Source: Anthoceros angustus
Lineage: Eukaryota; Plantae; Anthocerotophyta
Assembly: GCA_010909165.1 (NCBI GenBank)
Contig: VJWM01000116.1
Location: 620,001 to 684,000, forward strand
DNA: 64,000 bases
Reading direction: 5' to 3'
The first letter of the stretch is position 1. The number at the start of each line of letters is the position of its first letter. Of this stretch, positions 3,001 through 30,568 are shown piece by piece. The notes under the pieces were generated by a model, which saw only the letters and a list, made by a program, of their open reading frames with translations, made no database searches and was not told the DNA's origin. Both the position numbers and the translations under genes were made by a program.

Positions 3001-3088
3001 TCCTCATCGGAAGGTCCGAACTGCCTCATTGTCTTCTACTTCCAAAGTTTGGAAGTCCCTGTCTTGTCCTCCTCGGTGACATCTCTCG
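1..3088. repeat. About 2.06-kb tandem duplication inside the copy A cargo gene
   Basis: 1-1025 matches about 2070-3088. The junction carries the 10-bp shared sequence ACATCTCTCG (1016-1025 and 3079-3088). Confidence 0.85.
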
Positions 3089-3930
3089 ATGACGGATAAT
3101 GGAGCTCGTAATCACCTCACACAAGCACCAGAAATGTTCTCTCACTGTCCATCACAGGCAAGCACACCGTTAGTCGCATCAATGCAATCAACGCGGTGGC
3201 GAATGCTCGAATTAAGAAGTGTACTCACATTCTCAGCTCAACGCTCGAAAAGTCTTGGACAACTCCTTTGGCTCACATTTCTTCCTGTGCAAACATGCCA
3301 CTTTCAACAGACACAGTGTAATCATCGATGCGAATGCGTCCACTTCATAAGGCCTTGAAGTGCAAAGAATCCAGATTACGGGTCTCGCGCCCTCCATCCA
3401 AAGTTGCCCAGGACCCATCCCCTTGCTCTGGTTTGCGGTGCACCGTTGAACCCAAAACCCAAAGCTTGACATCGGCGTCCATAGCAGTTTCTTCATCCTC
3501 CTGTTTGTGTCAACAACCATTCCTGCTGCAGAAGCATAGTGTCCTCAAGCTGGTTCATGTGCCTCTGCAGCTGCACAGTCTCCTCATACGAGTATGGGGA
3601 GGGAATTGGATCTGGATTTCCCACCCTCAATCCTTTGGACAAGCCAGACTTCTCTCCACCACCAACCGTCTTTGTGGTGCTTGCCTTGTTGAGTGACCCG
3701 GACTTTATGCCCCTTCCGTTCCACCTCCACCTTGCTCAAGGTTGGAAAGCATGTCCAGCCCGGCGATCGGTATCGGCGGGAGGATCGTGGTTCTCGATTT
3801 CGCCTCCTTCTTGCTTTTAGATTTCTTCCTCCGCTTCTCCAACAAGTCTCCGTGGTTAGGCCACCTCGGAGGTCCTTCTTCATGCGGCGTCGCCGCCATC
3901 GTCTGTAGCACCCGCATAGGCATCAAACAC
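1..3930 (-). pseudogene. ParB/Srx-MTase fusion gene of copy A (N-terminal and ParB parts; MTase core not in window), frameshifted and internally duplicated
   Basis: EVLGGNHTYAAMKRLADISP at 2081-2116 and again near 7-40. RVRQVDEAW and GRIEEGVLPLLCMIDP present. Conserved GAAAG|GT donor at 1346. LEVHTWKG region near 1130-1150 matches copies B and C. Confidence 0.75.
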
Positions 3931-4999
3931 GCTCAATCCGGATTAGGCAAGCACCAATTCTATTTCGGACAAGGAATTTCTCACTGTCGTCCTCGGAAAG
4001 GATGGAGAGTGGCGCAGGGTCTGACGGCAAATTGTTGGGAAAACCACGCGCCTCGCTTGAATCGCAGACGCTCCGCGTTGGAAGAGCTCGTTACCACTGC
4101 TTGCAGCTCGGACCAGAAGAAGGACTCCACCGTTCGGGTTTATAAGGAGGCAGAAACCCCACTACCACCAGAATAAACGCTACCGTAACGAGGTCCGAGT
4201 TATTGTCCTTATCGCTATGTATGGAGGAACAAGGACCGAATATGGTGTGGCTTCGTTCTTTTAACCCATACCCAACATACCACACACCGCGCTGGCGTCC
4301 TTCGCATTGTCGATTGCACATCATTTTGCAAGGTAGTGTGACTGAACTACGTGTTTGTTTATCTACGCTGCATGCGGGCAAGCCTAATATGCAATTGGGT
4401 AAGTAAGAAAGCGTTTTTCATAACGTTCCAGATACCCTTTTTTTCCTGCCGCCGCTATTGATGGCTACCGGCCGTTCATTTTAACTGTATGGTAGCTGGC
4501 ATATGCGGCTGGCAGCATAGTAGCATAATAGCACCGCCCTCCATTACTCAAATCTATTTAGGATTTGGCAATCAAGTGATTTGTCCTCCACGGCTTCCCG
4601 CCTCCTCCGGGTCAAGTCATGTACCACACACCACCACCTTTTATCACACTTGTCGCGGTAGCCGTCGTAACCTTGAGCTACGAGTCCAACACAATGCTCC
4701 AGTTCACACACTCAAGACGCGATGGGTTTCCGTGTTATGTGCCCTTTCATTCCTTGACCGATACCAACGATTGCTATGTCATTGTAATGTAGATGTGCGG
4801 TCAAGAAGCGGACGAAGATTTCGGGCAAAATCAAGATGTTTCAGCCCAAAGAGTACGATCCTCAAGTGAAGGCAAGCGCTACTGGCCCTCCGCCTCGCCA
4901 GTAAATGCAAAGTCCTTGCCACTCTCCGCCACAAAGTATGTATTCTTTGGCCGATAGCTGAGTCGTCGAGTCTGCCTCGCCTCATACTCATTGGCATAG

Positions 5000-7900: not shown

Positions 7901-8153
7901 CAAAAGGTCGAAAGGGAAAGGGCCCCAACATCCAAAAGGTTTTGTGCGAAAACCATTATTATATACTACGGGTTTCACTCACTTCAGAAACATCTCAGAC
8001 GCAGCAGATAAGAAAGCTATAAAGGAAAAGTTGAGTGCCCGTCCTCACATTCAACCAAACACTTCGGATGAGGCAATGGAGAGTGATGAAGATGGAGATG
8101 AGGCCTGTGGACGGGACGAGGGTCTCGATTCAAAGAGTAATGACATGTGCTAA
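5000..8153 (+). pseudogene. Sola-like (DUF7869-type) DDD transposase of copy A, frameshifted, with intron
   Basis: CCNKLC; VKIPKSNRFSTCSIC (about 5893-5937); ID(G)MDQK (about 6648-6668); DNTCRENKNQ (6880-6909); KVGFLLVGHTH..DQMFS (6961-7014); C-terminal VAKVV..EHTDAYEGKY. GACCAAG|GT donor near 5979 is shared with copy C. Confidence 0.75.
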
Positions 8154-8844: not shown

Positions 8845-11800
8845 AATAACCATCTTAAACCCGGATCCACGATATAGACTGCAATCATGCGTATATTCAA
8901 CCGCTTCAAATATTATATTGCCTCACCGAATTCGAGATGCGATATGCGAAGAAGGTGGTCCAGACCCGGCCGGTAAAAGTGGAGAATCGCTCGCCTCTTA
9001 TCTAACCCGGATGCGCAGAGTGTGTGTGGATGAAGCGTGGACTAATTATCCGCTCGCGTGATTGGAAAGGGCCGAGTTGAGGAGGGCGTATTGCCCTTTT
9101 GTGTGATTGATCCCAAGGAGTGTGATGATCTAGAGGACTGGACCGAAAAATTCAGGCAAAGAAATACATCATGGGTGTGTTAGGGAACCACACATTTGCG
9201 GCAATGCAACATTTGGCGGACATATCACCAAAGGAAAGAGCGTTTCAAATGGATAGAGGCACATGTCTATTGTGGGCGACCACTGTGAAATGAGGGTTTT
9301 GGCGATCGATCACAATACAATGTCTCGATAAACGAAGATGTCATTCATAGAGCAAGTAAGATATCTCTAGATGAACGCTTATAGCCAAGGGATGGCGTGC
9401 ATATGTCCATGAATTGGAAGTTCAACGTATAAGGTATTGGGTCTTATCAAGATGATGAAGGAAGGGAAGATGATGCCTACAAAGCGAACAAGGTTGACAA
9501 CAGGATTTACATCTTGTGCATAGCGAAGTTGGAAGGAAGGGTATGGGAGAATGTGGACAAAATTTTTGCAAAGTGGGAGGCTTGTGACTAATGTAAGAAA
9601 CATGTGGCAGGATTGAGCAAAAGAGCAAAGGCAAACGGAAAAAATGAAGAAACAAGTTGAGGGTATATTGGTGAAGCCCAAGGAGATGCGATAAAGCCAT
9701 GGCGTTGCTTTCAAGGTTCCTTCTAGGGAGAGCGGGCAGCAATGTTTATTAGTGCCAGAAAGTTCTCACCGGCCTTATGGATTTGAAGGAATGTCGGATG
9801 AAATTATATTGCGAAGAAATTGCATATCATCCAAGTGGCCATGGCGAAGCACTTAGGATGTTCATCTTTTGAGATGGTGAGGCAAGAGTACCCACAACAT
9901 TCCACCGACGTAGTCGCTGTTCCGTGCTCGCCGAGGGAAAGGTATGTTATCATACTCTCTTGTTTCTTAGAACTTTATAGTGCAGGCGGGAGGAGGAGGC
10001 AGGCATGCGCCCTCCTTCCTCACTCCCTCATGTTTAATCGCTTAGTGGCCGGCATGCGGCGCCTGCAGGGGGCATCCCTCACGAGGAGGGGGGCCGGCAT
10101 GTGGCGCCCCCCCCTGATGCCCAGGGTAAGTGGAGGCGCCAGGCCTCTGACTAATATTGACAAGCATCTGTTTTGTGCAGCAACAAAAGACATTGAAGTC
10201 CTTACCAAGTGCCGAAAACTTTCAGCGGTTCATTTATGAGGTCAACACTTGGAAGGGCTTGAGGATGGATGGGCGAGAGCTCATGAGAGACATAGAAGAG
10301 GATTGTTGCACCACGTCCCTACCGGAGAAAAAGTACAGACGATTCATGCTCGAGATGCGGATATGCGAGGTTTTGTGAGGAAGAGGAGTTACTCTTTGCT
10401 TGTGATGGATGTCCACGTGGATTCGAGAAGGGCCCAAAGGATGGAAGGTTTGATATTTGGCAAGTGGGTAATGTTTTGCATTCCTTCCATGACTTGACGA
10501 ATGCAGTCAGGATGATCATAATGCATGGTGTGGAAGATTCACATATTGTGCGGAGCCTATGAAGTGGTGCGGAGGGTGGTCTTGTTTCATTTGTGTGGAC
10601 AAGACAAATGTCAACAACGACAAGGGTGGGTTTGATACGGTGGAGTATGTCACCGGGTAAGAAAAGCTCCGAGTCTATGTCATGTTACCTAATGTGGCAC
10701 TTTCAATAATGGTCGGTGATTGCCCACCATACTTGTGCGGTTTATCATTCACTTGACAAACTTAGTCTACCTACCGCCTTTAGGTTTGATGATGAAGCTT
10801 ATCAAGACATTCTCCAAGGAAGGGATGGATATTGGATGCATGTGCGTAGTGGGTCATCTTTAATGTGCCTTGTTGTGGCGAAATTGTATTTCTATCGAGG
10901 CGGACAGAGGTGTCAATTCATTCCAGCGTGTACATGGATATAATCTTGCGGAGGAGGCGACACATGAGCCGCATCGTCGGTGGTCCATCTCAGTGCAGGC
11001 CAAGGAGGTTTGCGTCGTGAAGGATATTGGGAAGGCTCAAATTGTGCCTCTAGGGTGAGCGAATGAAAGAAAGGTGGAGACCACATCGATGAGGGAACAG
11101 CAGACACTAGAGGGGCACACAGCCTCCCGAAGTTAATGAGGAAGGAAGGGTATGGGAGAATGTGGACAAAATTTTTGCAAAGTGGGAGGCTTGTGACTTG
11201 CAAGAAGAAACATGTGGCAGGGATTGAGCAAAAGAGCAAAGGCAAGCGGAAGCGTGGAAGAAACGAAACAAGTTGAGGTATATTGGTGAAGCCCAAGGAG
11301 ATGCGTATAAAGCCATGGCGTTGCTTTCAAGGTATTCTGCGGGAGAGCGGGCAACAAATGCTTATTAGTGCCACGAGAAAGTTCTCACCGGCCTTATGGA
11401 TTTGAAGGAATGTCGATGAAATTATATTGCGAAGAAATTGCATATCATCCAAGTGGCCATGGCGAAGCACTTAGGATGTTCATCTTTTGAGATGGTGAGG
11501 CAAGAGTACCCACAACATTCCACCGACGAAGTCGCTGTGTTCATCGCTTTGAGGGAAAGGTATGTTATCATACTCTCTAGTTTCTTAGAACTTTATATGA
11601 GTGGCGGGAGGAGGAGGGCGGCATGCGCGCCTCCTCCTTCCTCACTCCCTCCGCCGCATGCCGGCGCCCCTGCCGGTTTGAGGGCCGATGCCTCACGCCC
11701 CGTAGGTTTGGAGGCAGATGGGCGCCTCACCCCCTCAGGTGTGAGGAGGCGCAGATGCGCTAATATTGACAAGCATCCTGTTTGTGCAGCAACAAAGACA

Positions 11801-12880
11801 TTGAAGTCCTTACCAAGTGCCCGAAAACTTTCAGCAGTTCATTTATGAGGTCAACACTTGGAAGGGCTTGAGGATGAGCACGAGAGCTCGCAGATAGAGA
11901 CATAGAAGAGGATTGTTGCACCAGTCCCTACCGGGAGAAAAACAGTCAGACGATTCATGCTCGAGATGTCGGGATATGCGAGGTTTTGTGAGGAAGAGGA
12001 GTTACTCTTTGCTTGTGATGGATGTCCACGTGGATTCGAGAAGGGCCCAAAGGATGGAAGGTTTGATATTTGGCAAGTGGTAATGTTTTGCATTCCTTCC
12101 ATGACTTGACGAATGCAGCGATTCAGGATGATCATAATGCATGGTGTGGAAGATTCACATATTGTGCGGAGCCTATGCGGAAGTGGTGCGGAGGGTGGTC
12201 TTGTTTCATTTGTGTGGGACAAGACAAATGTCAACAACGACAAGGGTGGGTTTGATACGGTGGAGTATGTCACGGGTAAATAAGAAAAGCTCGAGTTGCC
12301 GTCATGTTATGTTACCTAATGTTTTGGCACTTTCAATAATGGTCTTGGTGATTGCCCACCATATTGTGAAAAGTGGTTTATCATTCACTTGACAAACTTG
12401 TTGTTGTCCCTACCAGCCTTTAGGTTTGATGATGAAGCTTATCAAGACATTCTCCAAGGAAGGGACGGATATTGGATGCATGTGCGTAGTGGGTCATCTT
12501 TAATGGTCGCCTTGTTGTTGCCGAAATTGTATTTCTATCGAGGAGACAAGAGGTGTGCGTAATTCATTCCACGCTGCGGTACATGGATAAGCATCACGGA
12601 TGCGGAGGAGGAGCCGATGAGCCGCATCGCCGTGGTCCATCTCACCTGGGCCAAGGAGGTTTGCGCGCCGAGAAGGATATTGGGAAGGCTCAAATTGTGC
12701 CTCTAGGGTCGAAGCGAATGAAAGAAAGGACTGGAGACCCTATCGATGAGGGGCAACAGACACAAGAGGTCAGATGGCACACCGGGTTGACGGAAGGAAG
12801 ACGACGACGCCCAATGATGGTCGTTGACTCTTTCGGAGAGATGATGAAGAACGTCCGAGAACGCCACCGTAGTTCCCGAT
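8845..12880 (+). pseudogene. ParB/Srx + beta-class N4C/N6A DNA methyltransferase gene of copy B, MTase half duplicated
   Basis: G(G)NHTFAAM near 9180. Introns 9942-10180 and 11560-11789. MDV(P)RGFEKGP at 10405 and 12018. CPYQ.PLGLMMKLIKTFSKEG.WILDAC..SG at about 10770-10860 and 12410-12500. RNCISIEAD follows. Confidence 0.8.
9531..12800. repeat. About 1.61-kb tandem duplication of the MTase half of copy B
   Basis: 9531-11139 is repeated from 11140. GGAAGGAAG is shared at 9531, 11140 and 12792. Confidence 0.85.
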
Positions 12881-13281
12881 AGTGAAGCCGTGTGCGCTTG
12901 AATCTTCGCATGAACTTCCTTAGGTGGCTAGAACGTTTTCTGCCGTAATCATGTCGTATGGGCCGTTGTCTTTGGAGTGGATGACACGCCGGATCTTCTA
13001 GTAGCAAGTTGTTCTCTCCGCCATGAGGCCGCTTTTGAATACATCCGAGCAACGACTCTACTTATAATCGAGCATTGCCGCTGTCCGCAAGCATCCCCGC
13101 ACCTTGGCACCTTCATTGCACTTGACACGAATTCAAATCTCAATCACAATGATTGCTTGCACGGCGCATGTGTCAAGAGACGTGTTTGGAGTGAATTAGT
13201 AACTGTATGAAAAGTACCAAGTGGCGGCAATTTTTCCATAACCGGCGTACATTATTCCGCCGGTATGAATATTATCGTGTT

Positions 13282-13889: not shown

Positions 13890-16800
13890 CGGACTTCCCT
13901 TGGGGGTTAGGAAATAAGTGGGGTTTTGTTTTTTTCGTAGGTCCGAAGAATAAAATAAGGCGGAAAAGGAGGAATAAGCGAGAATGATTACTCGGTGCCT
14001 GAGTATACTCCGGACTCGGATTGGGTAACGGACCTTGGTACCACTACTGACTACAATTGCCTTAGGGAGTATCGGGATAAGTCCGGACCCCACTCCGGGT
14101 CAAAGCAGGATAAATACGAGAAAGTAATTTAGAAGTTGAGTCGTGAGAGTGAGCGGCGCCCATGGGCGCCACAGTGGAGGTCGGGCATCATGAGCCAGGC
14201 CGTAGCCTTGCAGGCCGTTATAGCAGTATTCACGCCCGCGGATCACGCGGCGTAAGGCGGGTCTGTGGCGTAAGGTCGAGTAAGCCATGCGGACCTGGCG
14301 ATTACTGGACAGAAGAGCACCCTCGCCCATATTGCTAGCGCGGCCGAAGAGAGGTTTCTGCATGCGACCTCGACAATTCGCGGTCTCTTGCGCTGCAACC
14401 CGGCCCTCTGGCTATCTCTTGAGCGTCGGGCATCTTGGCGGCTCACCGTTGGGGTTGGAGCGTGCCCGAAGAGGCGCATCGTGCCGGCGATCTCGGGCAA
14501 TCGTCTGACGGCGAAAAGGAAGAAGCGATGGGACCCAAAGGCTGCGGAGGTATGGGAGAACCATGGCGCAACAGTAACGGCTATCCGGACTTTGGGCGGC
14601 TGGAGGCGGGAGGATTAGTCGAAGAGTGGCACTTAGGCGTGTTCGGGTACGGGCGTTTGTGATGTCACACAGTCAGGAGTTCGCCGGAAGATGTTGGCAA
14701 GGAGGTTCGTCCAAGAACCTCGGGAGGATCGAGGAGGTGGACCTTGGAGGTGTCTGAGGCGGCTTACAAGCGGAGGAGGTTGAGGCGTGGTCAGGCCCCT
14801 CAAGGCGAGGAAGATAGAAGGCAAGGCGGCGATCTTTGAAGCCGGGCAATGAAGACCGGTGGTTGATGCGGACCCAGGCGGAAGGGTGAGGCGTGCCGGA
14901 TCATTGTCCATGGAACTTGCTCACCAAGGTGGATCACCTTGGTGATAATTATTAGTGTTCTGCACGCATGCGTTGCGAGGCAAGGCGGGTGGAAGGATCA
15001 TCTTCGCAGGGTTCGGAGGCCTGTGAGGAGGCCAGCCTGTCCGGACTATGCATCCATGTATGGGGACATTACGACCTCTGAAGGATGGGGAGGTAGAGCT
15101 CGGAAGGGTTGGCGGCCCTACGAGGCGGAGGCGGCAAGGCGCAGGGTGAGGCCCGACCCCTAGGGCCAAGCAGGTCGGGAGGAGGGCAGGAGGGATCAGG
15201 ACTCCATCGTGCAGGCGGACCCCTCACCACCTAGGGAAGTGTGGGAAGATATCCCCGCTTCCCTCCTCTTCTTGGGGCGGCCCGGTCTGAGGAGAGCCCG
15301 GCTCAGCAACCCGGCCACTGGCGGAGGAGGCCCGGCGAACTCGCCGGGCAAGGCGGAAGGCGGTGCCACCCCATGCGGCCTCGGGTGCACTGCCTTGCCC
15401 TTGCAGGTAGCAAGAGGCGGTGAGAAGCGAGAAAGGGCGCTCAAGGAGGCGGGGAGGGCAGCAACCCAGGCCGGTCACATCGGCCGGGAGGCAAGGGTGG
15501 CTCGAACCCCCTCACCTCAGGGCCCCCCAGAAGAGAGGCGAATAGGGTGGCCAAGAGGGCCAAGGAGGTGAAGCTCCGGACCTCGGCAATCGGGACCTAA
15601 GGGACTGAGGTCGTCCGGAGAACCAGTCCGGACTTGCTCCTGCAGTATCAGAGGTCCTTGACCGTGAGATGCCCTCCTCTGGACTTTTGGGGCCTCACGA
15701 TTGGCGGCCGTGGAAGAGACCACAGGCGGGTCAGCACCGTCATGGGACGGTATGCTCAGGGTCTCTGGGACAGAGACCCGGGAAGTAGAAGCCACGGAGG
15801 CGCATGGTGCTCCTCCGAGGAGCAATTGGAGGCGGCCGAGGCGAGGAGGAAGGCAGCTCTCGAAGGAAGCGGAGGCGAAGGGAGTCTGGTCCATTAACGG
15901 ACTAAATTCTTCAGTGGGTGGCGGTGAGGCGAGCCTGAGGCCCAGCGGGTGAGACCTCTGCGGGCGGAGGGGTAGCGGAGGCGAGAGGAGGCCGGGCATA
16001 GCGAAGAAGGCTCGCGACGGCGGTGGACGGCCTGGTGGCCAGTGAAGGCGAGGAGGCGGGGCGTGCTAAGGCAACCGCGATCACTATCGGCGTGATCGGG
16101 CCGGTGGAGGAGGAGGCGGCGAGGATATGCGGCTAACACGAGGCGGAGGCGGCGGAGGCAGTGCGGCCGGCCATGCAGAGAGAAGAAGCCGCGAGGAGAT
16201 GGAGGATCTCCGGACTCGATTCGTGAGTGGAGCAACGGCGGGGAGATGGAAGGCGCAAGAGACCACAGGCTGCGGCTCAAGTTACCATTGAGCGGAATGG
16301 TGTCTGCGGGCGTGATCACGGATCACGAGCGAGATAAGCGGCTCCGGCTCTGTTGGGCAGACGGAGGAGGTAAGGCGATGGAGCAAGGAGGCGGGGCGTC
16401 GCGAAATGGAGGACTGGGCGAAACACGGCAGCGAGTTGCCCGGCCGTCTGGAGAGGAGATGGCGGAGCTAAGGCCGAGATGAGCAGGGGGAGGCGGAAAC
16501 CTTGGGCCTTGAGAAAAGCTGCTGGTCGATTAAGGAAGGCGGAAGGGGCTGCGCTATGGCGGAGTAAATGGCGGAGGCGGAAGCAGCGGGCTGGAGGCGG
16601 GCAACAGTGATTGCGAGGAGGTGGCCAGGCGGCCCTTGTGGCCTCGCTTCGGCCCGGCTCCGGTGACAGAACTGGCGAGGAGATGGTCAGCAAGCGGACG
16701 GCCGCTCGGCTCCGGAGCACCAATGGCGAAGGAGTATCGGGTGCTCGGGCACATGTGGAAGAGGCAATCCGACAAATTGACTCGGATTTTGCCTACTACC

Positions 16801-18600
16801 GAGCTCCTTAAGGCATTGGAAGCCTCTCGGCGCCCGCTACAAACGGACGGACCCGGAAGGCTCGAGAAGGGATGAAGGGCATGGGGACAGGGACCCTAGT
16901 GGCCTGTTTGGAGGCAGCAGTGAGGGAGAAGAGCCTCGGGAGGAGGCGGGGCCAGCCAAGCCTGGCGGACCTCGGGGTAAGTCCGCACGCTCGGGAGGAT
17001 AGGCGGGGCCACGAAGGCGGAAGGAGGAAGCAGGCCAAGACAAGGGTGGGTGGGTAGGGATGAGGGCCTAGCGGTGGAGGTCCCATGAGATAAAGTCGGA
17101 GCTTGGGGCCGGACCCGTGTAATAAGTTCGGACCACGAGGTCCGGAGATGAGCCGGACCCGTGACCGGACTCGAAATAAAGCGAGACTCAGTTCGGACTC
17201 GGGTCGAGGCCGGACCCCGGTGGGACTCGGGAAGCAGGTCCCTCAGGCTTATTTGAGGCGGTCGTCGGTGGCCCTAGGGAGGGACCCTTTGGGGGCAGGG
17301 GGAACGTTGTGTCGGTCGTCGGGCCGCCCGATGTGGCGGGATTAGGGAAGAGGAAGGGGTCCGCCTCGCGGATCATCCGATTAGGTGCGCATGGCCGGGA
17401 CGGAGATTGGACCACCTGTCTAGGCAGGAACCGGGACCTTCCGAGGCCACGGAAGGAGATAGGAGGGAGGAATAGGATGGTAGGCGATTAGGCGTCTTGG
17501 TGCCACCGGCTCGAATAGGGTAATAAAGGCACTTGGGCGTAGTATAAGAGAAATTTGAGGTCTCTGAATAAATCATCTTCTCTTGGTGTTGATGCGTTTC
17601 TTGCGGACCCTGTGTGTCTTCATGCTAACGTGAGTCCACGAGTCAACGCGCGGCCGGCTCGAGAGGCGATCAAGGTCCTCAGTGACGGACCCCTAGCGTG
17701 TGGTGGTGTGTGCGGGGAGGCGGGGACCGTGTTCGTCAGGCGGCCCGGCAGCCGACGGGCCGGGCAGTGAGGAGGAACTCGGGAGGTGTCTGAGCCAGGC
17801 GGAGGCCCGGTTGAGCACGGAGGAGGTCCGGATTGTGTAGCCGCCACTTGCGTTCTTTTCAAGGTTGATGGCGTGGTGAGTGATGAGAGGCGGACTAAAG
17901 GCAGTGACGTGCAGGGAGCAATCTGACGCACGGTCCTTAAGCGTTTAGCCTCACCTTGGGCTTTGAAGCGTTAGAGTAGTTAGGCGCAAAGCGACGATTG
18001 CGTGTGTGTTAAAGTTGAGCGGACGCCAAGTAAGGTGAGAATCGTGAAGCAAGCGGCGGAGCTTATCTTCTCTGAGAGCGGACTCTTACTACAGCGACAC
18101 TGCAGGATTATGCGGCGGTGGCGTCAGCGAAAGTCGCGCCACAACATGCATCTGATAGCTTAAACCTATCCAAGATCTCGAGTACATGGATTGAAGAAGA
18201 GTTCAATGTACTCGAGTTACTTGGATTGAAGAAGAGTTAGTGTACCAGCCTCCCTTATCTCGAAGGATTTGAACTCCGAGGCAGAATCCAAGAGGTCCTA
18301 AGTCTCTCATTTTAAATCGTGGCCGGATGACTGGCGTGGCACTTATGCTCCAAAGAGCTGGAGTGCGCCGGACGTCCGTCGCACTTATACTCCAAAGAGG
18401 TGCAGTGGGTTTGGAGAGGGTTAATCATTTTCAGCATGTAAACACTTTCGTTTGCTGTTGCCTATGCACACTTGCCACCGCAACAACACTCACCTCAATT
18501 CTCTTTTCAAACCCCATGATTCGTGAGCAATCCTGCAATGGCGAGCATACCTTCTGACCTATCCCTCTGCTTCGAGATAAGCCGCACTTAGATCTACAGC
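13890..18600. mobile_element. Unclassified GC-rich insertion, possibly an accessory region of a Gypsy-type retroelement
   Basis: Interrupts the Copia pol order. Broken Glu/Ala/Arg-rich coiled-coil-like frames on + (15700-16900), repeated GGAC(C/T)CG motifs, and a 34-bp tandem duplication near 18177-18245. No RT, integrase or recombinase motif recognised. Confidence 0.3.
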
Positions 18601-19889: not shown

Positions 19890-20499
19890 AAATTTTACCT
19901 GACTGAAACGAGGTTCTTGCCTACCTTTGGCACATAGAGCACAATTGTGAGGGTGATGATACCACCAGTCTTGCATGCTAGGGTGATAGTACCAGTGCCA
20001 CACACCCCAGCAGACTAGTTGTCGGCCATATAGATCAGCCCTCCTTCAGGTAATGGTCTGTAGGTTGAGAAGCAAGAACGGTCCTTGCAGATATGTGTAG
20101 AGGCGCCGTTGTCCAGGTACCATGACGAACAACTGCCATTGCCCATGGAGAGGGCAGCGATGAGAATTGTTGGTGCCCTCTGCACGACGTGAGCACTTTG
20201 GGGACCCTGTCTTCTTGGCTCCCCAGCTTGCTTGCCCCTACACTCTCATTCGAAGTGTACGGGACGCTGACACCAATGAAATTTTCCTTTCCGCCGAGGT
20301 TTAGAAGGTGCGGAGGAGGCTGACCCGTCGCCTGTCTTTCGCATACCTTGCCAATTCTTGTTTCTTGGATTCTTTGAATTCCTTTGACCAGGCTTGGAAG
20401 TGAATAACGCCTACGCGGGTGATACATTCTTGGAGGAAACTCTAGGGGAATCCTCCTCAATAAGAGCGATGATGGCCTCTGAGAGTGTCATGAATTCTC
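19890..20499 (-). pseudogene. Ty1/Copia gag C-terminus and aspartic protease fragment
   Basis: Minus strand reads EFMTLSEAIIALIEE, then WYLDNGASTHICKDRSCF...VCGTGTITL...VLYVPKVGKNLVSV. Confidence 0.9.
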
Positions 20500-20532
20500 A
20501 ACACCATATATCTTCAAGAGGGGGAATTTACA
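20500..20532 (+). repeat. Left terminal inverted repeat of copy C
   Basis: AACACCATATATCTTCAAGAGGGGGAATTTACA, preceded by TCTC. Confidence 0.92.
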
Positions 20533-21336
20533 TGATGGGGGTTTTCTTGAAAATATGCGCCAAAGGGGGTTACACATGGGTCTCAAAACGACGAATAGCA
20601 GGTTTTGGTGAAAGAACCACAAAAAAACAGGGTGTCCCATACACGTTGTCCCCCTTTTACAAAATGGGTACACGCCGTGGAAGGGTGCTCGAAATCCTTT
20701 ACCCATATGATGAAGGCAAATTAAGACCCACCGTCTTGCTAATGGGGAAAGGATGCCTGAACCTAGATTTGGGTCCGCACGGAAGAAAGTACGGTTGGCA
20801 TGCAAAACCCATAGTCTTCGCAAATTGCTTTGATGTCAAGGGTTTGGCAAAGGGTAGAGGTCATGCGATCGGGTCAAACCGACCGTATGCTTGGGGTTGG
20901 AGACAGTGGGCCGGCCGCCGCCTGCCTGTCTATGGAGGTCACGCCACGATTCTTGCCTCCGCAGCACCACAAATTGAAGAACAAACACCACCTACGGATC
21001 GAAGATGGTTGGGATCGCAACAACGCCTATCTATCATCCTCGACAAATTTGTCCAGCTATGGACAACACGCCACTATAATCTTGGGGCAGATAACCGCCC
21101 AAACACATACTTAATTTATTGCAAACCACATATACGGATACACGGTATTGTATTGCATTGAGGTGGTAATGGACCAAAAGCCAAACATGATTCACGCCGC
21201 TTACCCTAACAAAGGCTCGGACAAGGAGTAGGAATTTAGACCGGTGAAGCTAGAACCCTATATTTATCTCATGCGGAACCATTGCCTCCTCTCCCAATTC
21301 CTTCTCCATGGAAGCACGTTTACTCATCTCCGGAGG

Positions 21337-24300
21337 TCACTCCGTCATCGCCGCCGGACTGCCCCGCACCATGGTCATCACTATCCTCGGGGTACTTTCG
21401 GATGTCTGAATAAACCCACGCAATTCATTCAACTTATCCTTTATCGCTTTCTTGTCAACAACATATAAATGTTTTCGAGCATTCAAGACGAATCCATAAT
21501 AAAGGATTACCGTTGCGTTCACAAAGACTGTTGAATATTTTTGGTATACAAGGATTTGCTTCCTTTCTTCCCTACCTTGAAGCCATGTTCGGTACCGCCT
21601 AATTATATATTCCTCAACATATCTTCCCTCATATGCATCCGTATGCTCGGTCATATACCAATGAACGAGGAAGTGAGGTTTGGGCGACTCCAACTTCACA
21701 TCTATGACCTTTCCAATCCAAAATGGTCTCACATTGTGTGTCTCATGAACACGGACGCTATGAACATTCCTTTATTGATCTCCTAATATCGCCATTCAAA
21801 CGTGTCATATCTTCTTGTTGCTTGCCCAAATTTCTATATGCCCCCAAATACATATCGCGTTGTGGAAGTTCGCGCAGTAGCCGCTCAAAGAAAGCCGCAT
21901 CGGGCATGCATAAGGGCACTCAAGCGCCGCCCACTCTCGAAAACCACTTCCATGGTCGCGTAACCAACCCGATATGGTTGTCCACAATTACAGAATTTCT
22001 TCTGGTCAACCTAACTCCTCCCACCATGTGTACTCTTCCGCGTAACGTAAGGCCGGAGTCTGATAACCCTCGCTTCAAGTAAGCAACGCCTGCGTGAGAC
22101 AAGCGGCCTTTTTATCTCTAGCCCGCATAAGGCTAACAGGAGCAGGATTATCCTCCTGTGGCACAAACTTCAAAACTCCAAGCCTCCTTCGTTTCCCTCA
22201 AATATGTTGAGTAATCGCTTACTCCGATTCCACGACCGGCTTCCTGTTATCTTGAATTGATGCCGAACGATGATTATTCAATTTACTCACACAATACGCC
22301 CGCCCATCCCCGTCTTATTGGCCATACATACTTAAGTCGGGAACTTCCAAGATCTTCACCTCCGGCCTTGGAGTGTACGCTCCTCGATAATAGTTGCCAA
22401 TGCGGCGAGTGTGCGCTTCCTTGTGTTTCAAGCTTTTAGAGAAGCATGAAAACATCCGATCAATTTGATCATGGGTGTGCCCAACTAGCGAAGCCCACCT
22501 TCACTTTCTCAAATGTTCCATGTCTACCAACATGTTGAGATACGCAAAGAGTAGTTGGTTCTTGTTCTCCGGCAAGTGTTGTCCAAATTGTAAGTACAAC
22601 ACTTTAGGCACCCCATCATAATTGTGGATAACATCTTGAATGATGTTTATAGTCAAATTAGCGTCATTGCGGAGGTTGGCATAATGCAAATATGCCCTTG
22701 CTTTGTGAGTGTAATTGTGAATCATGCACCCCACAACGCAATCGAAATACATTCTTCATCCAAATTCGCCACCGCAAGAAATGCTAAGCTCTGCTTTCTT
22801 GGTCCATTCCATCGATGGCCAATAACATATATTTGTGGGGCTCCACGTAGCTCTTGCTGCGATGCTTTGTCATCTTCGCGCCACAGTACCGATCTCGATG
22901 GGCATCTAAGGCTGCGATATTTTTCTCGCAAACAATTGGTGTTAAAAGTGCTAGACATTCATGTGCATTGCGTATATAGGATCATTGCATCATGTCATCT
23001 GCGACTTTGGTGAAAGGCGCCGGCTCACGGGCGTCATCCTCATACCACTCCGCGGGCTATCCACTAACACCGCAAACCGCCACCACCTGACACCCGCATC
23101 TTGGTGGGAGATGAGAGGCGCCGGCCCGCCGCGCCTCTATCCGGAGGCGCCTCGACAAAGCCGATGTTCACTGCCGGCCATACCTCTTACTATGGAGTGC
23201 AATGCCATGAGGAGCATGGAAAACGTTCCTTCTTACTACCCTAACCTTCCCGACACACCTTTACCTTCCCACCCAAAGCTTCCTAGGTTGGCCAAGACAC
23301 TTCCTCCTCTTCCCTACACCGGGACGCCTCTTCCATAGAATGCACAAGCTGCGTAAACCCCGAGAGGTGCTAAGAGGAGTGGGCCACGCCCACTCATTGG
23401 TCGAACTCGACATGGTAGCCTACTTCAATGAGCACGTCCCTTTCAACATGCCACACTCAAATTACAGAACACGATGTACTAACCACCTCAAGACATGGAG
23501 AGTGTGCAGCCATAACAAAGGACATAGAAGGACACATAATGTACTCACCGAAAGGATTCGGAGAATACCTTGGTCGACTTTAGTGTGTTTCTAATTGTCG
23601 CTTTTAACTCAAGCGAGCACGGAGAACCTGTTGGACTTTGGAATCTTCACCGCTAAAGTTCTCCTCCAAAGTTTCAAAACCAAGCATAGGTGACAAACCG
23701 TTGATGGAACCCTCACATTGCCGCTTATATTTTGCCCAAATTTGAACTTTGTAAATGTGTCCGGAAGATTGAACACATCAACATTGGGGAGCCTTTCCGC
23801 CATGAACAGAATGCGCTGTCCATCCACGCGATTGCACCTCGCGATATGTAGACATGTTAGGGTTTGCTCTAAAGCCATCCCACTGCATGTGCAATAACCC
23901 TTCTTCAGCCTCCTCATACCTACTATGGCCAATGCAATATACCTGCGAAGGCTCGAGGCAGATCGATGACCGACCCCATAGATGAGTCACAACTTTATCA
24001 TTGTGGCCACGCGATCGACGTGAACAAGAGATTCCAAATGTCTCTCGCCTGCCCGCCCATTCAGAAACGTATCTCGCCTCGCAACCTTTCTATAGTCAAT
24101 TTCGAACACACATTTGGTTGCAACAGGCTTGGAAATCAAGAGACGCAGCCCCGCATTTCCTCATCGCACACCACCGGCCTTTTGACTTGAAACAAGAGCC
24201 TTTGTTGCTATCAAGCTTTCGCTCAATGGCTTGGGATGGTATGATTGCGGGCATGTCCACTCTGTTTGAAAGACGCCATCCTCCTCGTCGAAGTCACCGA

Positions 24301-25200
24301 CCGCCTGGAGGATACCTTTCCCACTCATCCATAGTAGGAAATAAGTCGCCTCAATGCTTGAGGCCCTCCTACTGGCGAGCAGTGTCCACTACTTTGTGCA
24401 TTCTCATGCAATGACGGGCTCCTATCTAAGGCGGCATACAAATTGAGGTTTTCTGTCCGAGGCACACCCCAATGATGGTGAAGATGAACCTGCGCCCATT
24501 GTGGCCACCATCGAACGAGCTGCAAATGCAAAGATTGGTATGTAGGAACGGAATTCAAGCAAGTAGGAATGACGCCTGATTCTCTCCTGGTTATACCTTC
24601 GGAATGCGTCCTTTTGGGAAGGCAGAGGTCCACACACCACATGCCGAGACCGTATTTGAGGCACGCTTAGTATCCTCCTCCTTTGTGCAACGCCCTCCTT
24701 GCGTTGTCTTGAATTGCGAATGCCGTCGCAAGACAAGCTCCGGAGGCGATGCACCCGACGGATGGAATAGAGTCCACAAGATCTAAAGAAGCCCAAAACT
24801 CGGCAAATTGAGAACAGGACAATCCATACCTCATCTCCATCCAAAGGATGAGTAGCATTCAACATGTTTGTGAAGGGTGGTAAACGAGCGACGACCTCAA
24901 GTGTCGGGTCAGGAACGAAACCCTTGCCGAGTGCAAGGTTAAGGCAAACTTGGGTCAATCATTCGGGACAAATGGACGTTAATAGCGTATCGCTTAGATA
25001 TGCGGCTTATGGGACAAGGAATGGCGGCTTTAACTACATTGCATTTATGCTCGGCATCCCACATGGAATGATTGTGGCGAATGGGGATTTTGATTACCAT
25101 GATGGTGATACTTGTGGTACTCCTACTTTGGTTTGGTGGAACTTGCTGCGAATGAAAAATAGTTCTACCTGCTCCATCCATACATACGAGTTTTCGAGCT
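21337..25200 (-). pseudogene. Sola-like (DUF7869-type) DDD transposase of copy C (frameshifts may be sequencing errors)
   Basis: ERLPNVDVFNLPDTFTK...KLWRRT.AVKIPKSNRFS; MLLAIDGMDQ (22798-22828); VVGCMIHN...DANLTINII...LYLQ(LDN)..ENKNQ; KVKVGF.LVGHTHDQIDRMFS (22459-22482); C-terminal RPFWIGKVIDV..FLVHWY. The 5' end is approximate. Confidence 0.8.
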
Positions 25201-25699
25201 GTGGTTAGGTTTTGCTGGTACCTTCATGTGGATACGCTGGACATGATGTTTGAGCATCCTTTCAACCCTAATGTCGATGGGGTTATTATTGCCCTAGGGA
25301 AGAAACAGGATTATCTCTTTTACTGGAGCAAATCAGTGTTTGTAAGTCGAGGTGTGCATCGAGACACCGTCTCGAAGGGAACACTTCACCAAGAGTGCGC
25401 CCTCCTGTGACGAGCGCCAAGGTCGAGCGTTGCGCCAGACCGCAGCCAGACTATCCGCCTGTGAAGCCGGAGCAATTGCGCACGCCATCGCCGCCACGCC
25501 CTCCCTTGCCAACATCCTCTAATCCAAGGTCGACACGGGTTTTGCTCTTCCATCTTCCACCTCTCGAGCAAGAATTGCGGTCGTCATCTGGTTTGGGTGG
25601 CCTTCCAGATGGCAATGGGTCGCAGGAGCAAGAAGGACCAGGCGATAGAATCGATCACCCCGACCCCTCTGTAAGGTGAGGAGATCAAAAGCGCTGTGG

Positions 25700-28600
25700 A
25701 AGGGAAGGCATCCGCGGGCGCCCATGGATGCACCTCAAGGGCGCGGAGGGTCGACCGAGCGATGGAACAAGTCGGGCCCCGCCTTATTGGGTCGCAATTG
25801 GTAGGAGCTGAATCGAACCGGAGCCTTACTTCCAGAAGGCTAGCACAACCAAAGGTCTTCCCATCGGTGACAAGGAGACAAAGCATGGCGCAGCCTATTC
25901 CATCCCCTTACGCCTTTGAGGAGACTGTCTACATACGAAGGCTTGGAGCCCGGATGGATTCCACACCTCTTTTGGATAAGGACCGGATGTTGGTTCAAGA
26001 ATCGGAGCCGTGATGAAGGTATTTTCTGGACACCACTCTTCAAGTTGTGGATCATGGGATACAAGGATGCCTTGCCTAATCACGAGCGAGGGTTGGGTTG
26101 TGTGGGCGAACCCGATATGTGTCAAGGAGACCCATCGCGCAATCGCTCAGATAACAAAGCCATGTGAGTTTGATGAAGTGCCACAAGGGCCCGAGCTATA
26201 CAGGGCATTTGATCTCAGGTTCAACAACCTGATCATCAAGAAATGCGAGCCTCAGAGGCTGGTGCAGATCTTTCGCGAATGTAGACGAGAACAAACGGTA
26301 ATTGTTCAGAAGGCATTTTGGGGGTAGAGAGACCTCTGTGTATGTTTTTTCGGTGCTTTCTGCTTGGTCTCTAACCACAAATGTTGTGTCAACTGCAGGG
26401 GCCTCAAATTGGAAATGCATACATCAGGGCCCTATGTGCAGAAATCACACAATCGGTTGTTCAGACAAGAGTCATGTCCCTAAGGCGCACTCGAGCACGG
26501 CTGGTTGAGGAGGAACATCTCGGCTCGATGATTGTGAAGAAGGAAGCGAGCTTGGACCGAAGATGAAGACGATGGCCCTATTCCCGATATTCACGGGATG
26601 ATGATCAATCGGATGCGCAGAGGTTCGAGATCCGCTGGAGACCGGGGGCCTGGGTAGGTGAGAGGAAGGGCGCTGCCACCGCCTGCAGGAAGAGGCAACT
26701 GATTTGGTGACCCCGATCCGGATTGGTTTGCGCTTCTGGGGCAGGGGCCGCCACCCGCGTTTGCATCATTCTGGAAGCACCACCGGGGCAGATCATGGTG
26801 ATCCTGAAGAGGCGCCGGCCGGCCCCCTCTCCTTCCCTCCATGCAGGATGTGAGTGGGAATAAGAGCAGCAAAGGAAAAAGGAAGGCAGTAGAGGGCCAT
26901 GCATCAGGCGAGAGGAGTCATTCAGAGAGCTTGGAGCTGGCTAGTGGACCAGGAAAAAAAACCAATAGTATGCAAAAGGCGCAGGAGTTGCTGGAGGACA
27001 TACCTTCTGTCCATGTATCAACGGACAAGGAGCGGTTAGCAGATGCTATTCGGGATGAAGACCCCCTAACGCGCATTAGGGAATCGGCCTATTCCAAAAA
27101 GGTTGTTTTGGAGACAGCTTGGTGAAGTTGGAGAACCTTCGCCAAGATCACACCTCACACCGATGCTCGACACGGAGGGTTGACGAAGCATGGACAAATT
27201 ACTTGGCACGCGTGATTTCAAGGGCGGATTGAGGAAGGCGTGTGCCTCTATTATGTATGATTGACCCGCAGAGTGTGAAGACCGAGCAAACTTGATTGGG
27301 ACAAGTTCGGGCAAAAAATACGTCATGGGGTTCTTGGAGGCAACCACACCTATGCGATGAAGCACTGGCGATATATGTCCCGGGAAGACTCGCCAAGACG
27401 TGGAGGCCCATGTGTATTGTAACATGAAATGCAATTCTGCAACAGATCACAATGTGTTGTCGAGAGGAAGAAAATGAATTTCATTGAGCAAGTCGATATT
27501 TGAGGGACGATGATTATCGCAAATGACGGAGTGATGACCATGGCATGGAAGTTTAATCATAAACCGCTAGGGTTGATTGACGGCGAGGGGCGAAGACGAT
27601 GTATATAAAGTACAAAGTGGACAACAGGACTCATATTTTGTGTATTGCAAAAGGTGAGGCGAGTATGGGAGAATGTGGATAAGATTTTTACAAAGTGGGA
27701 AGCCGGGAGCTTGAGCAAAAGAAACATGTCGCGGTGGGCACGAGCAAGAAAGGCAAAGGAAAACGGAAGGTCATCAAGAGTCAAAGAAAATCGATCGCAT
27801 ATGTGAAGTCAAGGATATGCTTGCAAAGCCTTGGAAATCGCTTCAAGGAATACACCGTGAATGCGCAATGATACTAATATCGAACGGAGAAGGTTCTTGC
27901 GGCTTATTGACCTAAAGGGCATGGATGATGATATCACCCTCCCAAGAAATTTCACATCATCCAAGTGGCGATGGCGAAACACCTTGGGTGCTCATCGCTC
28001 GAGGAGGTGCGGAAAGAGTATCCCCATCATGCAAGATAGTGTGCACGGTTCAAAAAGATTTGCCGGAAAGGTGAGAAACACTTTCTATTCAATAGTTCTG
28101 GAGTTGGGTGTGTGGCGTGTGGAGGGCGCGGGCCGGCGCCTCCACAAGGGAAGCTGCAGAGGGCGCCGGCGGCCGGCCACCAGTGCCGGTGGATGGCGCG
28201 CGCCCACCGCGCCGGCCATGTGGAGGCGCGGCCGCCCTCGGCGGAGGGCGGCGGGCCGCGCCCACCCAGAAGCTGGTGATGGAGGGCGGCGGGCGCCCCC
28301 ACAGGCGGATGGAGGGCCGGCGGCCGCCCACCCGTGAAGCTCGCCGGTGGATGGCGCGCGGGCGGCGCCTGAAGCCTCGCCGATGGAGGGCGCCGGCCGG
28401 CGCCTCACCTGAACGCAGAGGGGCGCCTCTTCATACCGAGCACGACGATGTGGTTTTGTTTTTAATTTGCAGCAACTAAAGGACGTTGAGGTTTTGGCGC
28501 TGGGATGACTTCCGCCATTTCATATTTGAAGTCAACAACTGGAAAGGACTTGAAAACGAGCAAAGGGCTTTAATGATAAGGACCGGAAGAAGGTCTTAAC

Positions 28601-29664
28601 ATTTTTACCGTGCCTTCCGGATACAAAGTGTTCAATACTGTGGAGGCAAGAAATATTCTTGACATGCGGGGTTTCGAGGACGAGGGGTACACGCTCGGTA
28701 ATGGACGTTCCACGAGGTTTGACATTGGCCCTATGGATAAGCGGGTGGACATGGCAATGATGCAGTTTTGAGCTTTGGAAAAGACAACAAGTGAAGAATT
28801 CCGCATTATAGTGATGCATGGGGTCAAGAAGCCCACACCGGGGAATCCATGCGAACATGGACAGGGAAAGGCGGATTGGTATCCTTCATATGGGATAAGA
28901 CCAACATGCATAATGACAGAGGCGGGTTTGAGACGTGGAGTACATCATCGGGATGGTGTCTCGAAAGACACAAGCACAAAGGATAGAGCTCCTATCTGCC
29001 GAATGCTATGCACGGACGTTCAACAATGGGAGGTCGGTTATAGGACACGCCATGGTGAAGAAACAGTGTACCGGCCAATGACAAACTTGTGGTATGCCCT
29101 TATCAACGCCCACGGGTCTTCTTATGAAATCGATAAGGACCTTCTCAAAGGAAGGGGACTGGGTTCTTGATGCATGTTCGGGCAGCGGGACCACCACACT
29201 TGCTGCAGTCCTGAGTGGACGCAACTGCATTGCAGTTGAGGCAGATTTGAGATGTGCAGGGTACATTCCTCAGCGAATACATGGTTATGAGGTGCTTCCG
29301 GATGCAGAGGAAGAGCTTACATTTCAACCGCATCGCCGAGGACCATCACAATTCTGGGCAAAGGAGGTATGTATCAGCGAAAAAGATAGTCTGAAGGCAC
29401 AAGTTGTTTCTTTGAGTGCGGGCAGACGACAGTGAACTTTTGGAAGATGGGCAGCAAACGTTGGATGATGTATGGCTGCACACATTGGACCCCAAGGGTG
29501 ATGTGAACGAAGACGAAGGCCTTGGAAGAAAACAGAATTTGAAGACGCAGAAGATGAGCGCATTAGAAACCTCGGCCGTTGTCTTAGACTCGACAGATGT
29601 GCGAGACGAGTCGCAGATGAGCCCTCCTAATGATCCTGTACGCCCGTATGTGGTCCAGTATTAA
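25700..29664 (+). pseudogene. ParB/Srx-like domain + beta-class N4C/N6A DNA methyltransferase fusion of copy C (possibly intact in vivo)
   Basis: VLGGNHTY at 27330-27353; GT-AG intron 28071-28472; MDVPRG at 28701-28718; SFIWDKTN; VEYII; (C)PYQRPTGLLMKSIRTFSKEGDWVLDACSGSGTTTLAAVLSGRNCIAVE (about 29090-29240); stop at 29662-29664. Motif IV precedes motif I, which is the beta-class order. Confidence 0.85.
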
Positions 29665-29976
29665 ACGATAAGTTTTGTGGTCGGATAGAGGTATACATGA
29701 AGGTTGGCCACTCCCATAGTTTGCGTGTAAAAACCTTCTTGAAGTGGCGGAATTTTAATTTTCTTTCCTCCGCTTTGGAGCATTGCTTTCATTTAGGGTT
29801 CAACTATCGCCGCCACCGCGATAGTTTACCACACGCACACATGGAACCGTGAAACCGTTGTTTCAAAATGGGATCTATCGGACAAGGGTGGACATACGTC
29901 ACCAACGTGAAAAAATCATAGTTTCCCGAAAGGTGCGATGTTTGTCAAGAGGGTCCACCAGCAACTGAAGAGGGTT

Positions 29977-30009
29977 TGTATATTCCCCCTCTTGAAGATA
30001 TATGGTGTT
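29977..30009 (-). repeat. Right terminal inverted repeat of copy C
   Basis: TGTATATTCCCCCTCTTGAAGATATATGGTGTT, followed by TCTC. Confidence 0.92.
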
Positions 30010-30568
30010 TCTCCTAGGTTCAGTTTCTTAGCCTAGACAGATTGCTTGATGAAACCGTTTTGAGTCGAGACGAACGTGCGCTAGCTTGAGGGCAGAGTCA
30101 TCGGGAGGGCATGGCCGCGTGGGCCTCTGTAAGCGTTGTCCCGCATAAGGCCAGTCTTGCTCTCAGTGTGTGGAAGGCGCTAAGGTGTGTGTGGATACTT
30201 TCACCATCCCTGTATTTAAGCATGTGAAAGTTCCTTGTGGTAGCAACAACGTGCTGCACGTCTGTGGCTTCATACATTTGGTTGAATCTCTCCCAAATGG
30301 CTTGAGCATATGCGGCACCAAAGGTGTCGTGTACCATGTCCTTATCGAGTCTGGCGATGAGCAGATTCTGGGCTCATCTGTCAGACTTCATCCATTGATC
30401 AAAGGCTAGGGTTCCTGAGGCAGGGCAGGACACAGACCCGACGACTATTGTCTAGAGGTCTGCGTCCGGGTCCTCAAGATGTCCCCTCATCCGGGTGGCC
30501 CATACATTGTAGTCCACACCCGTGAAACTGTCTTTTTCTTTGATCTCAATGATTGCGCAGACTACCAT
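30010..30568 (-). pseudogene. Ty1/Copia gag N-terminal part
   Basis: FTGVDYNVWATRMRGHL...W..SD..AQNLLI...AQAIWERFNQMY...FHMLKYRDGESIHTHLSAF...TLPSS*RTFV, with in-frame stops. Confidence 0.88.

Follow-up and report, generated by a model that had tools for sequence, protein, structure and literature searches.

In a 64,000-nucleotide stretch of the Anthoceros angustus genome (contig VJWM01000116.1, positions 620,001 to 684,000 of the forward strand; hereafter the window, numbered from its first letter), there is a 9.5-kb element carrying two genes on opposite strands, one for a DUF7869-type transposase (21340-23986, minus strand) and one, the cargo, for a protein with a ParB-like part and a beta-class amino-methyltransferase part (26937-29432, plus strand). 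An inverted-repeat scan returned a single outstanding pair, the 33-nt terminal inverted repeats (TIRs) of the element, which are complementary at 32 of 33 positions and enclose both genes. At up to three mismatches, the TIR sequence occurs only at these two sites within the 64-kb window, and it does not occur in any of 100 shuffles. The tetranucleotide TCTC is present at both ends as a target-site duplication (TSD), and both flanks are parts of one minus-strand Ty1/copia retrotransposon, indicating that the 9.5 kb are a true cut-and-paste insertion between gag and pol. The element that a first-pass annotation, made from the letters of the sequence, had delimited by 33-bp TIRs and a 4-bp TSD is thus upheld. 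The ends and flanks are as follows.

20018-20245, minus strand: flank, Ty1/copia Pol beta-barrel (Pol_BBD; Pfam, E 4.5e-9)
20496-20499, unstranded: left TSD copy, TCTC, read from the sequence and equal to 30010-30013
20500-20532, plus strand: left TIR, 33 nt (inverted-repeat scan and shuffles)
29977-30009, minus strand: right TIR, 33 nt (inverted-repeat scan and shuffles)
30010-30013, unstranded: right TSD copy, TCTC, read from the sequence
30101-30373, minus strand: flank, Ty1/copia gag (Retrotran_gag_2; Pfam, E 8.9e-10)

The interrupted Ty1/copia host element is itself decayed (20018-20487 and 30101-30373, minus strand). The methylase gene occurs in the window in four copies, among them copy A, copy 2 and copy 4, the last being that of the 9.5-kb element. 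No further TIR copy was found in the 64-kb window at up to nine mismatches, so the ends of copy A stay undefined.

The transposase of the 9.5-kb element is composed of remnants on the minus strand, with the following features.

21340-23986, minus strand: transposase pseudogene, DUF7869, DDD type (Pfam and homologue alignment)
21382-21726, minus strand: C-terminal barrel-like part
22459-22482, minus strand: third-Asp motif GHTHDQID, present
22501-22503, minus strand: in-frame TGA just before the third-Asp motif, codons checked
about 22570-22640, minus strand: second-Asp motif LDNTCR, readable in another frame only
22799-22816, minus strand: first-Asp motif IDGMDQ, present
24425-24958, minus strand: open frame of 178 codons preceding the transposase remnants, with no Pfam match and no match to the other copies

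Two adjacent pieces match Pfam DUF7869 (22504-22755, E 1.8e-13, 51 bits; 22318-22500, E 1.1e-9, 38.6 bits; gathering cut-off 26), the structure neighbours of which are DDE_3/ISAzo13 transposases. An intact homologue is found in locus L005 (Logan contig, run SRR33208241; 56-6752), where an uninterrupted 619-amino-acid (619-aa) DUF7869 open reading frame (ORF) on the minus strand scores 168.5 bits; the element transposase aligns with it at 47% identity over 160 residues (tblastn, E 8e-31). Furthermore, three Asp motifs are conserved across this copy, copy A, Riccia and L005, namely IDGMDQ, (Q/R)MDNT..NKN and GHTH..(I/V)DQ. The DDD pattern of the transposase therefore appears to hold at family level, with the catalytic roles of the three Asp residues inferred from their conservation. 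The DDD transposase of the first-pass annotation stands to that extent, but it is broken in this copy by the TGA and by the second-Asp motif falling out of frame. Specifically, the open transposase frame reads LQFGQHLPENKN where the second-Asp motif is expected. As read, the transposase of the 9.5-kb element is dead. Its N-terminal piece (23612-23986) has a counterpart in copy A at 5711-5930, and the 178-codon frame at 24425-24958 may be the transposase N-terminus. No mention of DUF7869 was found in the literature searched.

The cargo gene, divergent from the transposase, shows the following features.

26937-29432, plus strand: ParB-like and beta-class amino-methyltransferase pseudogene, with pieces conserved in three other window copies
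27242-27500, plus strand: ParB-like domain remnant, in two frames, ending at a TGA (27501-27503)
27628-28024, plus strand: helical middle region (VWENVDKIFTKWE, PWKSLQGI and LGCSSLEEVRKEYP), crossing four frame changes; contiguous in fern, Ginkgo and L005 proteins
28037-28480, plus strand: GC-rich stretch without coding match, with palindromic sites GAGGGCGCGGGCCGGCGCCTC (28122) and GAGGGCGCCGGCCGGCGCCTC (28386)
28701-28721, plus strand: motif IV equivalent MDVPRGL, non-canonical, with a frameshift on each side; aligns with LDLPRGL, ADVPYGF, ADAPYGF and VDIPHGY
28769-28771, plus strand: in-frame TGA in a conserved block, QF-stop-AL here versus QFARL in relatives
29080-29112, plus strand: DKLVVCPYQRP, the conserved PYQKP block, in a frame that differs from that of the directly following motif I
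29118-29327, plus strand: motif I and S-adenosylmethionine (SAM)-binding region, with DACSGSGTT at 29169-29195 (family hidden Markov model, 98.8 bits)

The methyltransferase part is identified by a match of the plus-strand piece 29082-29432 to N6_N4_Mtase (PF01555; E 4.4e-10, 40.3 bits, cut-off 26.7), and a frameshift-aware alignment of the cargo to the profile, which covers profile positions 503-829 and passes through frame changes, reaches a score of 169.9. The DKLVVCPYQRP block is 81.8% identical to DKLVVSPYQKP of L005. The ParB-like remnant consists of the blocks VPLLCMIDP, VLGGNHTYAM, EAHVYC, DHN and RKKMNFIEQV. Pfam scans of single ParB-region pieces of the cargo gave no match, and the ParB part of copy 4 alone reaches a frameshift-aware score of 32.1 against a shuffle maximum of 32.3, while that of copy 2 reaches 79.1 with the family profile (shuffle maximum 28.1). 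Run on all six-frame window pieces, a hidden Markov model of 39 family proteins gives a weak ParB signal for copies A and 2 but none for copy 4. The VLGGNHTYA block of copy 4 shares 51% protein identity with copy A. The ParB part of copy 4 is thus, as far as the sequence can tell, recognizable only by way of copy A, copy 2 and the outside relatives.

The frame of the cargo changes at least seven times (at about 27663, 27737, 27886, 27938, 28700, 28715-28733 and 29112-29118), and in-frame TGAs stand at 27501 and 28769. In particular, within the helical middle region VWENVDKIFTKWE passes to PWKSLQGI at about 27737, and PWKSLQGI passes to LGCSSLEEVRKEYP at about 27886 and 27938. Because these blocks are contiguous in homologues, much of the apparent splicing is attributable to frameshifts, and the cargo reads as a pseudogene. 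The stretch 28037-28480 is probably an intron, since the corresponding place in L005 is occupied by about 400 non-coding nt. The divergent, spliced gene with ParB and beta-class methyltransferase motifs that the first-pass annotation had described therefore keeps its orientation, its N6_N4_Mtase match and one probable intron, but it is a pseudogene without a canonical motif IV, and its ParB part is not significant by itself. All three in-frame stops of the two pseudogenes (22501-22503, 27501-27503 and 28769-28771) are TGA.

A low-coverage DNA run of the same organism (X2) yielded short contigs that represent related copies and are 90-99% alike. In one such contig, an additional G after 28715 and six extra nucleotides at 28762-28776 keep the frame through VMDVPRGFDIG. 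The same contig differs from the window by four substitutions and eight gaps in 277 nt, indicating that it represents another copy and not this locus, and that less damaged copies exist in the genome. The indels of this contig near motif IV, together with the intron-like stretch at 28037-28480 and the nearly perfect TIRs, are what would speak for an intact and autonomous copy, whose frame changes and stops would be assembly errors or small introns and whose cargo would be expressed and spliced. We consider such a copy very improbable: the frame changes fall in homologue-contiguous blocks that leave no room for introns, the three in-frame TGAs are spread over two genes, a catalytic motif of the transposase can be read out of frame only, the contig that restores the frame belongs to a different copy, and the sequencing-run search returned no RNA from the stretch.

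The transposase and the ParB-methylase gene are found together at further loci. An exhaustive search with the exon piece 29082-29432 returned no close relative, and its distant plant matches were Ginkgo Gb_37443 with four paralogues, two proteins of Riccia sorocarpa and several from Logan contigs; a search with the N-terminal half added many fern proteins (Adiantum and Ceratopteris) and dozens of contigs, and a third search brought in a Riccia protein of 693 aa in which both halves are present. A Ginkgo protein (P0003) scores 65.7 bits with N6_N4_Mtase. Two Riccia loci show the pairing: at L002 the methylase gene has a divergent DUF7869-type gene (ISIDGMDQ) upstream of it, and at L003 a ParB piece, a methylase and a DUF7869 gene scoring 104 bits are found within 7 kb. 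In L005, the plus strand, facing the transposase, carries a 488-aa ParB-like ORF together with LDLPRGL and motif I, and a gap of about 400 nt in this series appears to be an intron. L005 is a much better preserved element of the window's motif clade. The Logan contigs with DLPRGL, L005 included, show no nucleotide similarity to the window, indicating that they are not copies from the same species. At L004, another locus with a DLPRGL gene, we observed a Peptidase_C48 (Ulp1-like) and a RecQ-type helicase fragment, at 11918-12892 and 15394-15961; plant DNA transposons of other kinds typically carry such domains.

Within the window, the pairing recurs in copy A over about 1341-7996, as the first-pass annotation had noted, although in decayed and rearranged form. 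The following pieces belong to the other window copies.

1341-2485, minus strand: copy A ParB-methylase, decayed and divergent from its transposase (score 92.9, shuffle maximum 33.1)
5711-7996, plus strand: copy A transposase, decayed, of a diverged subfamily (E 2e-20 versus L005)
9026-11052 and 11087-12717, plus strand: two tandem decayed ParB-methylase fragments, with a period of about 1.6 kb

The copy A transposase keeps RMDNTCRENKN and GHTHQVDQMF, and its first-Asp motif is mutated to IDAWTKN. Two tandem duplications were observed within the decayed copy A cluster: one at 41-3043, with a period of about 2.06 kb, covers the 5′ part of the minus-strand methylase, and the other, at 9531-12505, repeats the plus-strand methylase fragments about every 1.6 kb, its copies being 85-100% alike.

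DNA transposons of other kinds pick up fragments of host genes, and the termini of copy A were not found, leaving its boundaries unproven; both points would suit a chance, Pack-type capture of the methylase-like gene by one element. Such a capture is hardly credible, and we give it the least weight of the readings considered, since the same pairing stands at the two Riccia loci, in L005, in the diverged subfamily of the window and, in print, in the Ectocarpus transposon Sola1-1_Ec32. The combination of transposase and ParB-methylase appears instead to be a trait of the family, and the view that the cargo is not a one-off capture has held.

For the fold of the accessory protein, structure models were built from intact relatives, the fern protein P0161 and the methyltransferase P0014, and not from the broken window copy. 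The model of P0161 residues 205-521 (29-sequence alignment) has a predicted local distance difference test score (pLDDT) of 80.8, and its top PDB match has an E-value of 9.5e-6 at a probability of 1.00. ParB or Noc structures take the first 17 places among the PDB matches, sulfiredoxin and KorB come next, and the alignments span the Srx-like N-terminal domain and the helical part that follows it. Furthermore, the 488-aa ParB-like ORF of L005 aligns with the fern profile at 99.4% probability (hhalign, E 2.2e-21). P0014 belongs to the motif clade of the window; the model of its residues 50-335 reaches a pLDDT of 87.9 and matches CcrM, M.MboIIA, M.BceJIV and M.RsrI at E 1.5e-12 to 6e-11; further matches, down to 2e-9, include M1.HpyAVI and M.PvuII, and the rotifer N4CMT stands at rank 11 (E 1.2e-10). 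The models support a ParB/Noc-type fold and a CcrM/MboIIA-type fold in the intact relatives.

The order of the methyltransferase motifs is that of the beta class, as MDVPRGL (28701) lies upstream of DACSGSGTT (29169), and the same order is found in the relatives. None of the plus-strand frames of 26000-29900 contains a canonical motif IV, (D/N/S)PP(Y/F/W). In the family, the motif takes the following forms.

Ferns: D-A-P-Y-G-F
Riccia: D-V-P-Y-G-F
Ginkgo: D-I-P-H-G-Y
Window (D-V-P-R-G-L) and five reading frames of run SRR33208241: D-L/V-P-R-G-L

D-L-P-Y-G is the form seen in many of the closest prokaryotic matches. Degeneracy of motif IV in the whole family was considered and is ruled out, D-x-P-Y-G being common in the nearest prokaryotic relatives, the ferns and Riccia; its occurrence in the prokaryotic relatives marks it as a natural variant of motif IV and not as decay. 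The Arg in place of Tyr, by comparison, is a derived feature of the window's clade. With the aromatic residue of the catalytic loop replaced by Arg, methyl transfer in this clade is uncertain.

Several prokaryotic proteins (P0005, P0016, P0018, P0026, P0034, P0039, P0100 and P0138) carry two to three N6_N4 domains, with S-P-P-Y and D-L-P-Y-G in one chain, and it is their D-L-P-Y-G domain that the methylase of the plant transposons is similar to. In 12 prokaryotic matches with both a D-x-P-[YF] and an SPPY domain, the window exon aligns best with the D-type domain every time (12/12). A D-type motif IV is typical of N6-adenine enzymes. Together with the nearest prokaryotic relatives, this type of motif favours an N6-adenine over an N4-cytosine ancestry.

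These observations bear on the proposal of the first-pass annotation that the element might be a reservoir of domesticated plant writers of N4-methylcytosine (4mC). The family and the Marchantia DN4MT1-type writers are both of the bacterial beta-class N6_N4 type, both occur in bryophyte-grade plants, and the family is present in the liverwort Riccia. That the family was the source of the DN4MT1-type writers is nevertheless very unlikely, and the proposal is disfavoured: MpDN4MT1 carries TSPPY (bioRxiv 10.1101/2021.02.12.428880), in contrast to D-x-P-(Y/H/R)-G in the family, the window exon prefers the D-type domain in all of the two-domain prokaryotic matches, and the text of the MpDN4MT1 preprint does not mention "ParB".

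A different role can be considered for the clade of the window, in which the accessory protein would be a pseudo-enzyme that keeps its ParB and methyltransferase folds for binding DNA or SAM, like METTL14 or the inactive DIRS1 domain, and that might serve as a transposition cofactor or as an anti-silencing DNA-binding factor. The Arg is shared by the window and five intact D-L/V-P-R-G-L reading frames (P0004, P0009, P0014, P0184 and locus L005), which keep the PYQKP block and motif I; P0004, P0009, P0014 and P0184 are mutually 36-55% identical, and the predicted fold is confident. As all five frames come from one sample, they are to be counted as paralogous transposon copies of one genome; moreover, Arg might still position the target base or another substrate, and D-x-P-Y-G-F is kept in ferns and Riccia, as in many presumably active prokaryotic relatives. 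We regard the pseudo-enzyme as possible, although on the unlikely side. More doubtful, and put forward tentatively, is a stronger version, according to which the D-V/L-P-R-G-L clade would be a selected, functionally shifted module, with Arg in place of the base-stacking Tyr, that would sense DNA or SAM without methylating or act enzymatically on a new substrate, and for which the GCCGGCCGGC and CGGCATGCCG palindromes described below would be the putative binding sites.

We consider it highly probable that the 9.5-kb stretch is a dead, non-autonomous, Sola1-like cut-and-paste transposon that carries the standard ParB-N6_N4 methyltransferase accessory gene of its family and that is inserted in a Ty1/copia element. 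Since the TIRs are near-identical while the genes are wrecked, the copy would most likely have been moved in trans, by the transposase of a more intact copy. In intact members of the family, the accessory protein would probably bind DNA through its ParB part. Members with D-x-P-Y-G-F (ferns and Riccia) would probably methylate an exocyclic amino group, N6-adenine rather than N4-cytosine, while those with D-V/L-P-R-G-L may bind DNA and SAM without methyl transfer. Marking of the element itself or of its targets, which the first-pass annotation had suggested, falls away for this locus: with both genes pseudogenes, the 9.5-kb copy cannot mark anything. For the Arg-containing clade in general, self-marking by N6-methyladenine (6mA) or 4mC appears doubtful.

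Several points weigh against the reading of the locus as a dead Sola1-like element with a ParB-methylase accessory gene. The first concerns the ParB assignment. The first-pass annotation had named both profiles as decisive, and whereas N6_N4_Mtase is matched in the cargo, no Pfam ParB family is matched above threshold by the window pieces or by the intact relatives; DUF6551 is reached at sub-threshold values (E 0.005-0.04). The second concerns the decay, as a few of the indels may be assembly errors, the contigs of the DNA run being short. Third, the sequencing-run search returned no RNA from the stretch, and one run marked "RNA?" contained next to none of the sampled words. Fourth, the TCTC target of the element departs from AWWT, the hallmark target preference of Sola1 (PMC3845634, citing Bao et al. 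2009), a comparison in which one site cannot establish a preference. The element is called Sola1-like on the grounds of DUF7869, the length of the TSD and the published description of the Ectocarpus element. Finally, the functional roles given here to the accessory protein are inferred throughout. An Rfam scan of the window found no RNA family.

The closest known system is Sola1-1_Ec32 of Ectocarpus, a 21.5-kb element with an opposite-strand gene for a 1104-aa protein with ParB-like and DNA methyltransferase parts (Genome Biol 2025, PMC12477816); the caveat of the first-pass annotation that the design might already be published was well placed. Sola1-1_Ec32 is likewise a large TIR DNA transposon with the ParB-methylase opposite the transposase. 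The element described here, likened to it by the published description, differs in its land-plant host, its length of 9.5 kb, its state as a dead copy and its D-V-P-R-G-L motif. More generally, a 4-bp TSD, TIRs and a DDD transposase with three Asp motifs on an RNase H-like core are features shared with the Sola1 superfamily (Bao et al. 2009, cited in PMC3845634 and PMC5751038).

The prokaryotic beta-class enzymes (CcrM, M.MboIIA, M.RsrI and M.BceJIV) share with the cargo the position of motif IV before motif I; PYQKP of the transposon family has its counterpart in HPTQKP of the bacterial enzymes, and the SAM loop of motif I is of the FxGxG type. In contrast to the prokaryotic enzymes, including the ParB-fused forms of phages and plasmids, the gene described here belongs to a eukaryotic transposon and probably contains an intron; its ParB part is followed by a long helical linker, and in the window's clade Arg stands in for the catalytic-loop Tyr. 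MpDN4MT1a/b and the bdelloid N4CMT also have a beta-class N6_N4 fold and a bacterial descent in eukaryotes, but they are host genes of the S-P-P-Y type without a ParB or transposase partner, whereas the family here is of the D-x-P-(Y/H/R)-G type. Mobile elements with a domain of the DNA-modification type are further known from DIRS1, whose methylase domain is thought to be catalytically inactive (PMC4738411), from DNMT-carrying retrotransposons of dinoflagellates and charophytes (PMC5890265), and from KDZ elements with TET/JBP; they resemble the present element in that respect and differ from it by another transposition mechanism, another methyltransferase class and the lack of a ParB module. 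A 2016 survey of eukaryotic adenine methylases lists few in land plants and no land-plant ParB fusion, and no report of a land-plant ParB-methylase transposon was found in the literature searched.

The design was known already from a brown alga (2025), and what is added here is its spread in land plants, with paired elements in a liverwort and in L005 and the accessory gene in ferns and Ginkgo. The motif IV series D-x-P-Y-G-F, D-I-P-H-G-Y and D-L/V-P-R-G-L offers natural variants for probing plant transposon-encoded 6mA/4mC writers or their inactive derivatives. The 9.5-kb locus itself is a clean example of an insertion whose ends are intact and whose genes are dead, and adds little beyond that.

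In the window elements there are, in addition, GC-rich palindromes that share the same frame, GAGGGCGCC...GGCGCCCTC, and that differ between two element subfamilies. Copy A contains palindrome arrays cored on CGGCATGCCG, with seven exact 10-mers, while copy 4 contains a few sites cored on GCCGGCCGGC; in both subfamilies the palindromes are above chance, with 0 matches in shuffles. Their positions are as follows.

485-780, 1206-1316, 2570-2830, 6107-6148, 9995-10110 and 11610-11663: palindrome regions of the copy A cluster
26809-26829, 28122-28143 and 28386-28407: palindromes of copy 4

Repeated palindromes like those of the window elements were not found in L005, L004 or L001, indicating that the arrays are not family-wide. 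It is a speculation that the palindromes serve as putative binding sites of the ParB part.

Two further features of the window lie outside the element. The region 14000-18000 is 62% G+C and has a strong positive GC skew (0.20-0.29) and long minus-strand open frames rich in Pro, Ser and Arg. An identical 32-nt stretch occurs at 35399 and at 37386, about 2 kb apart, which suggests a further direct repeat, for example long terminal repeats or a tandem duplication.

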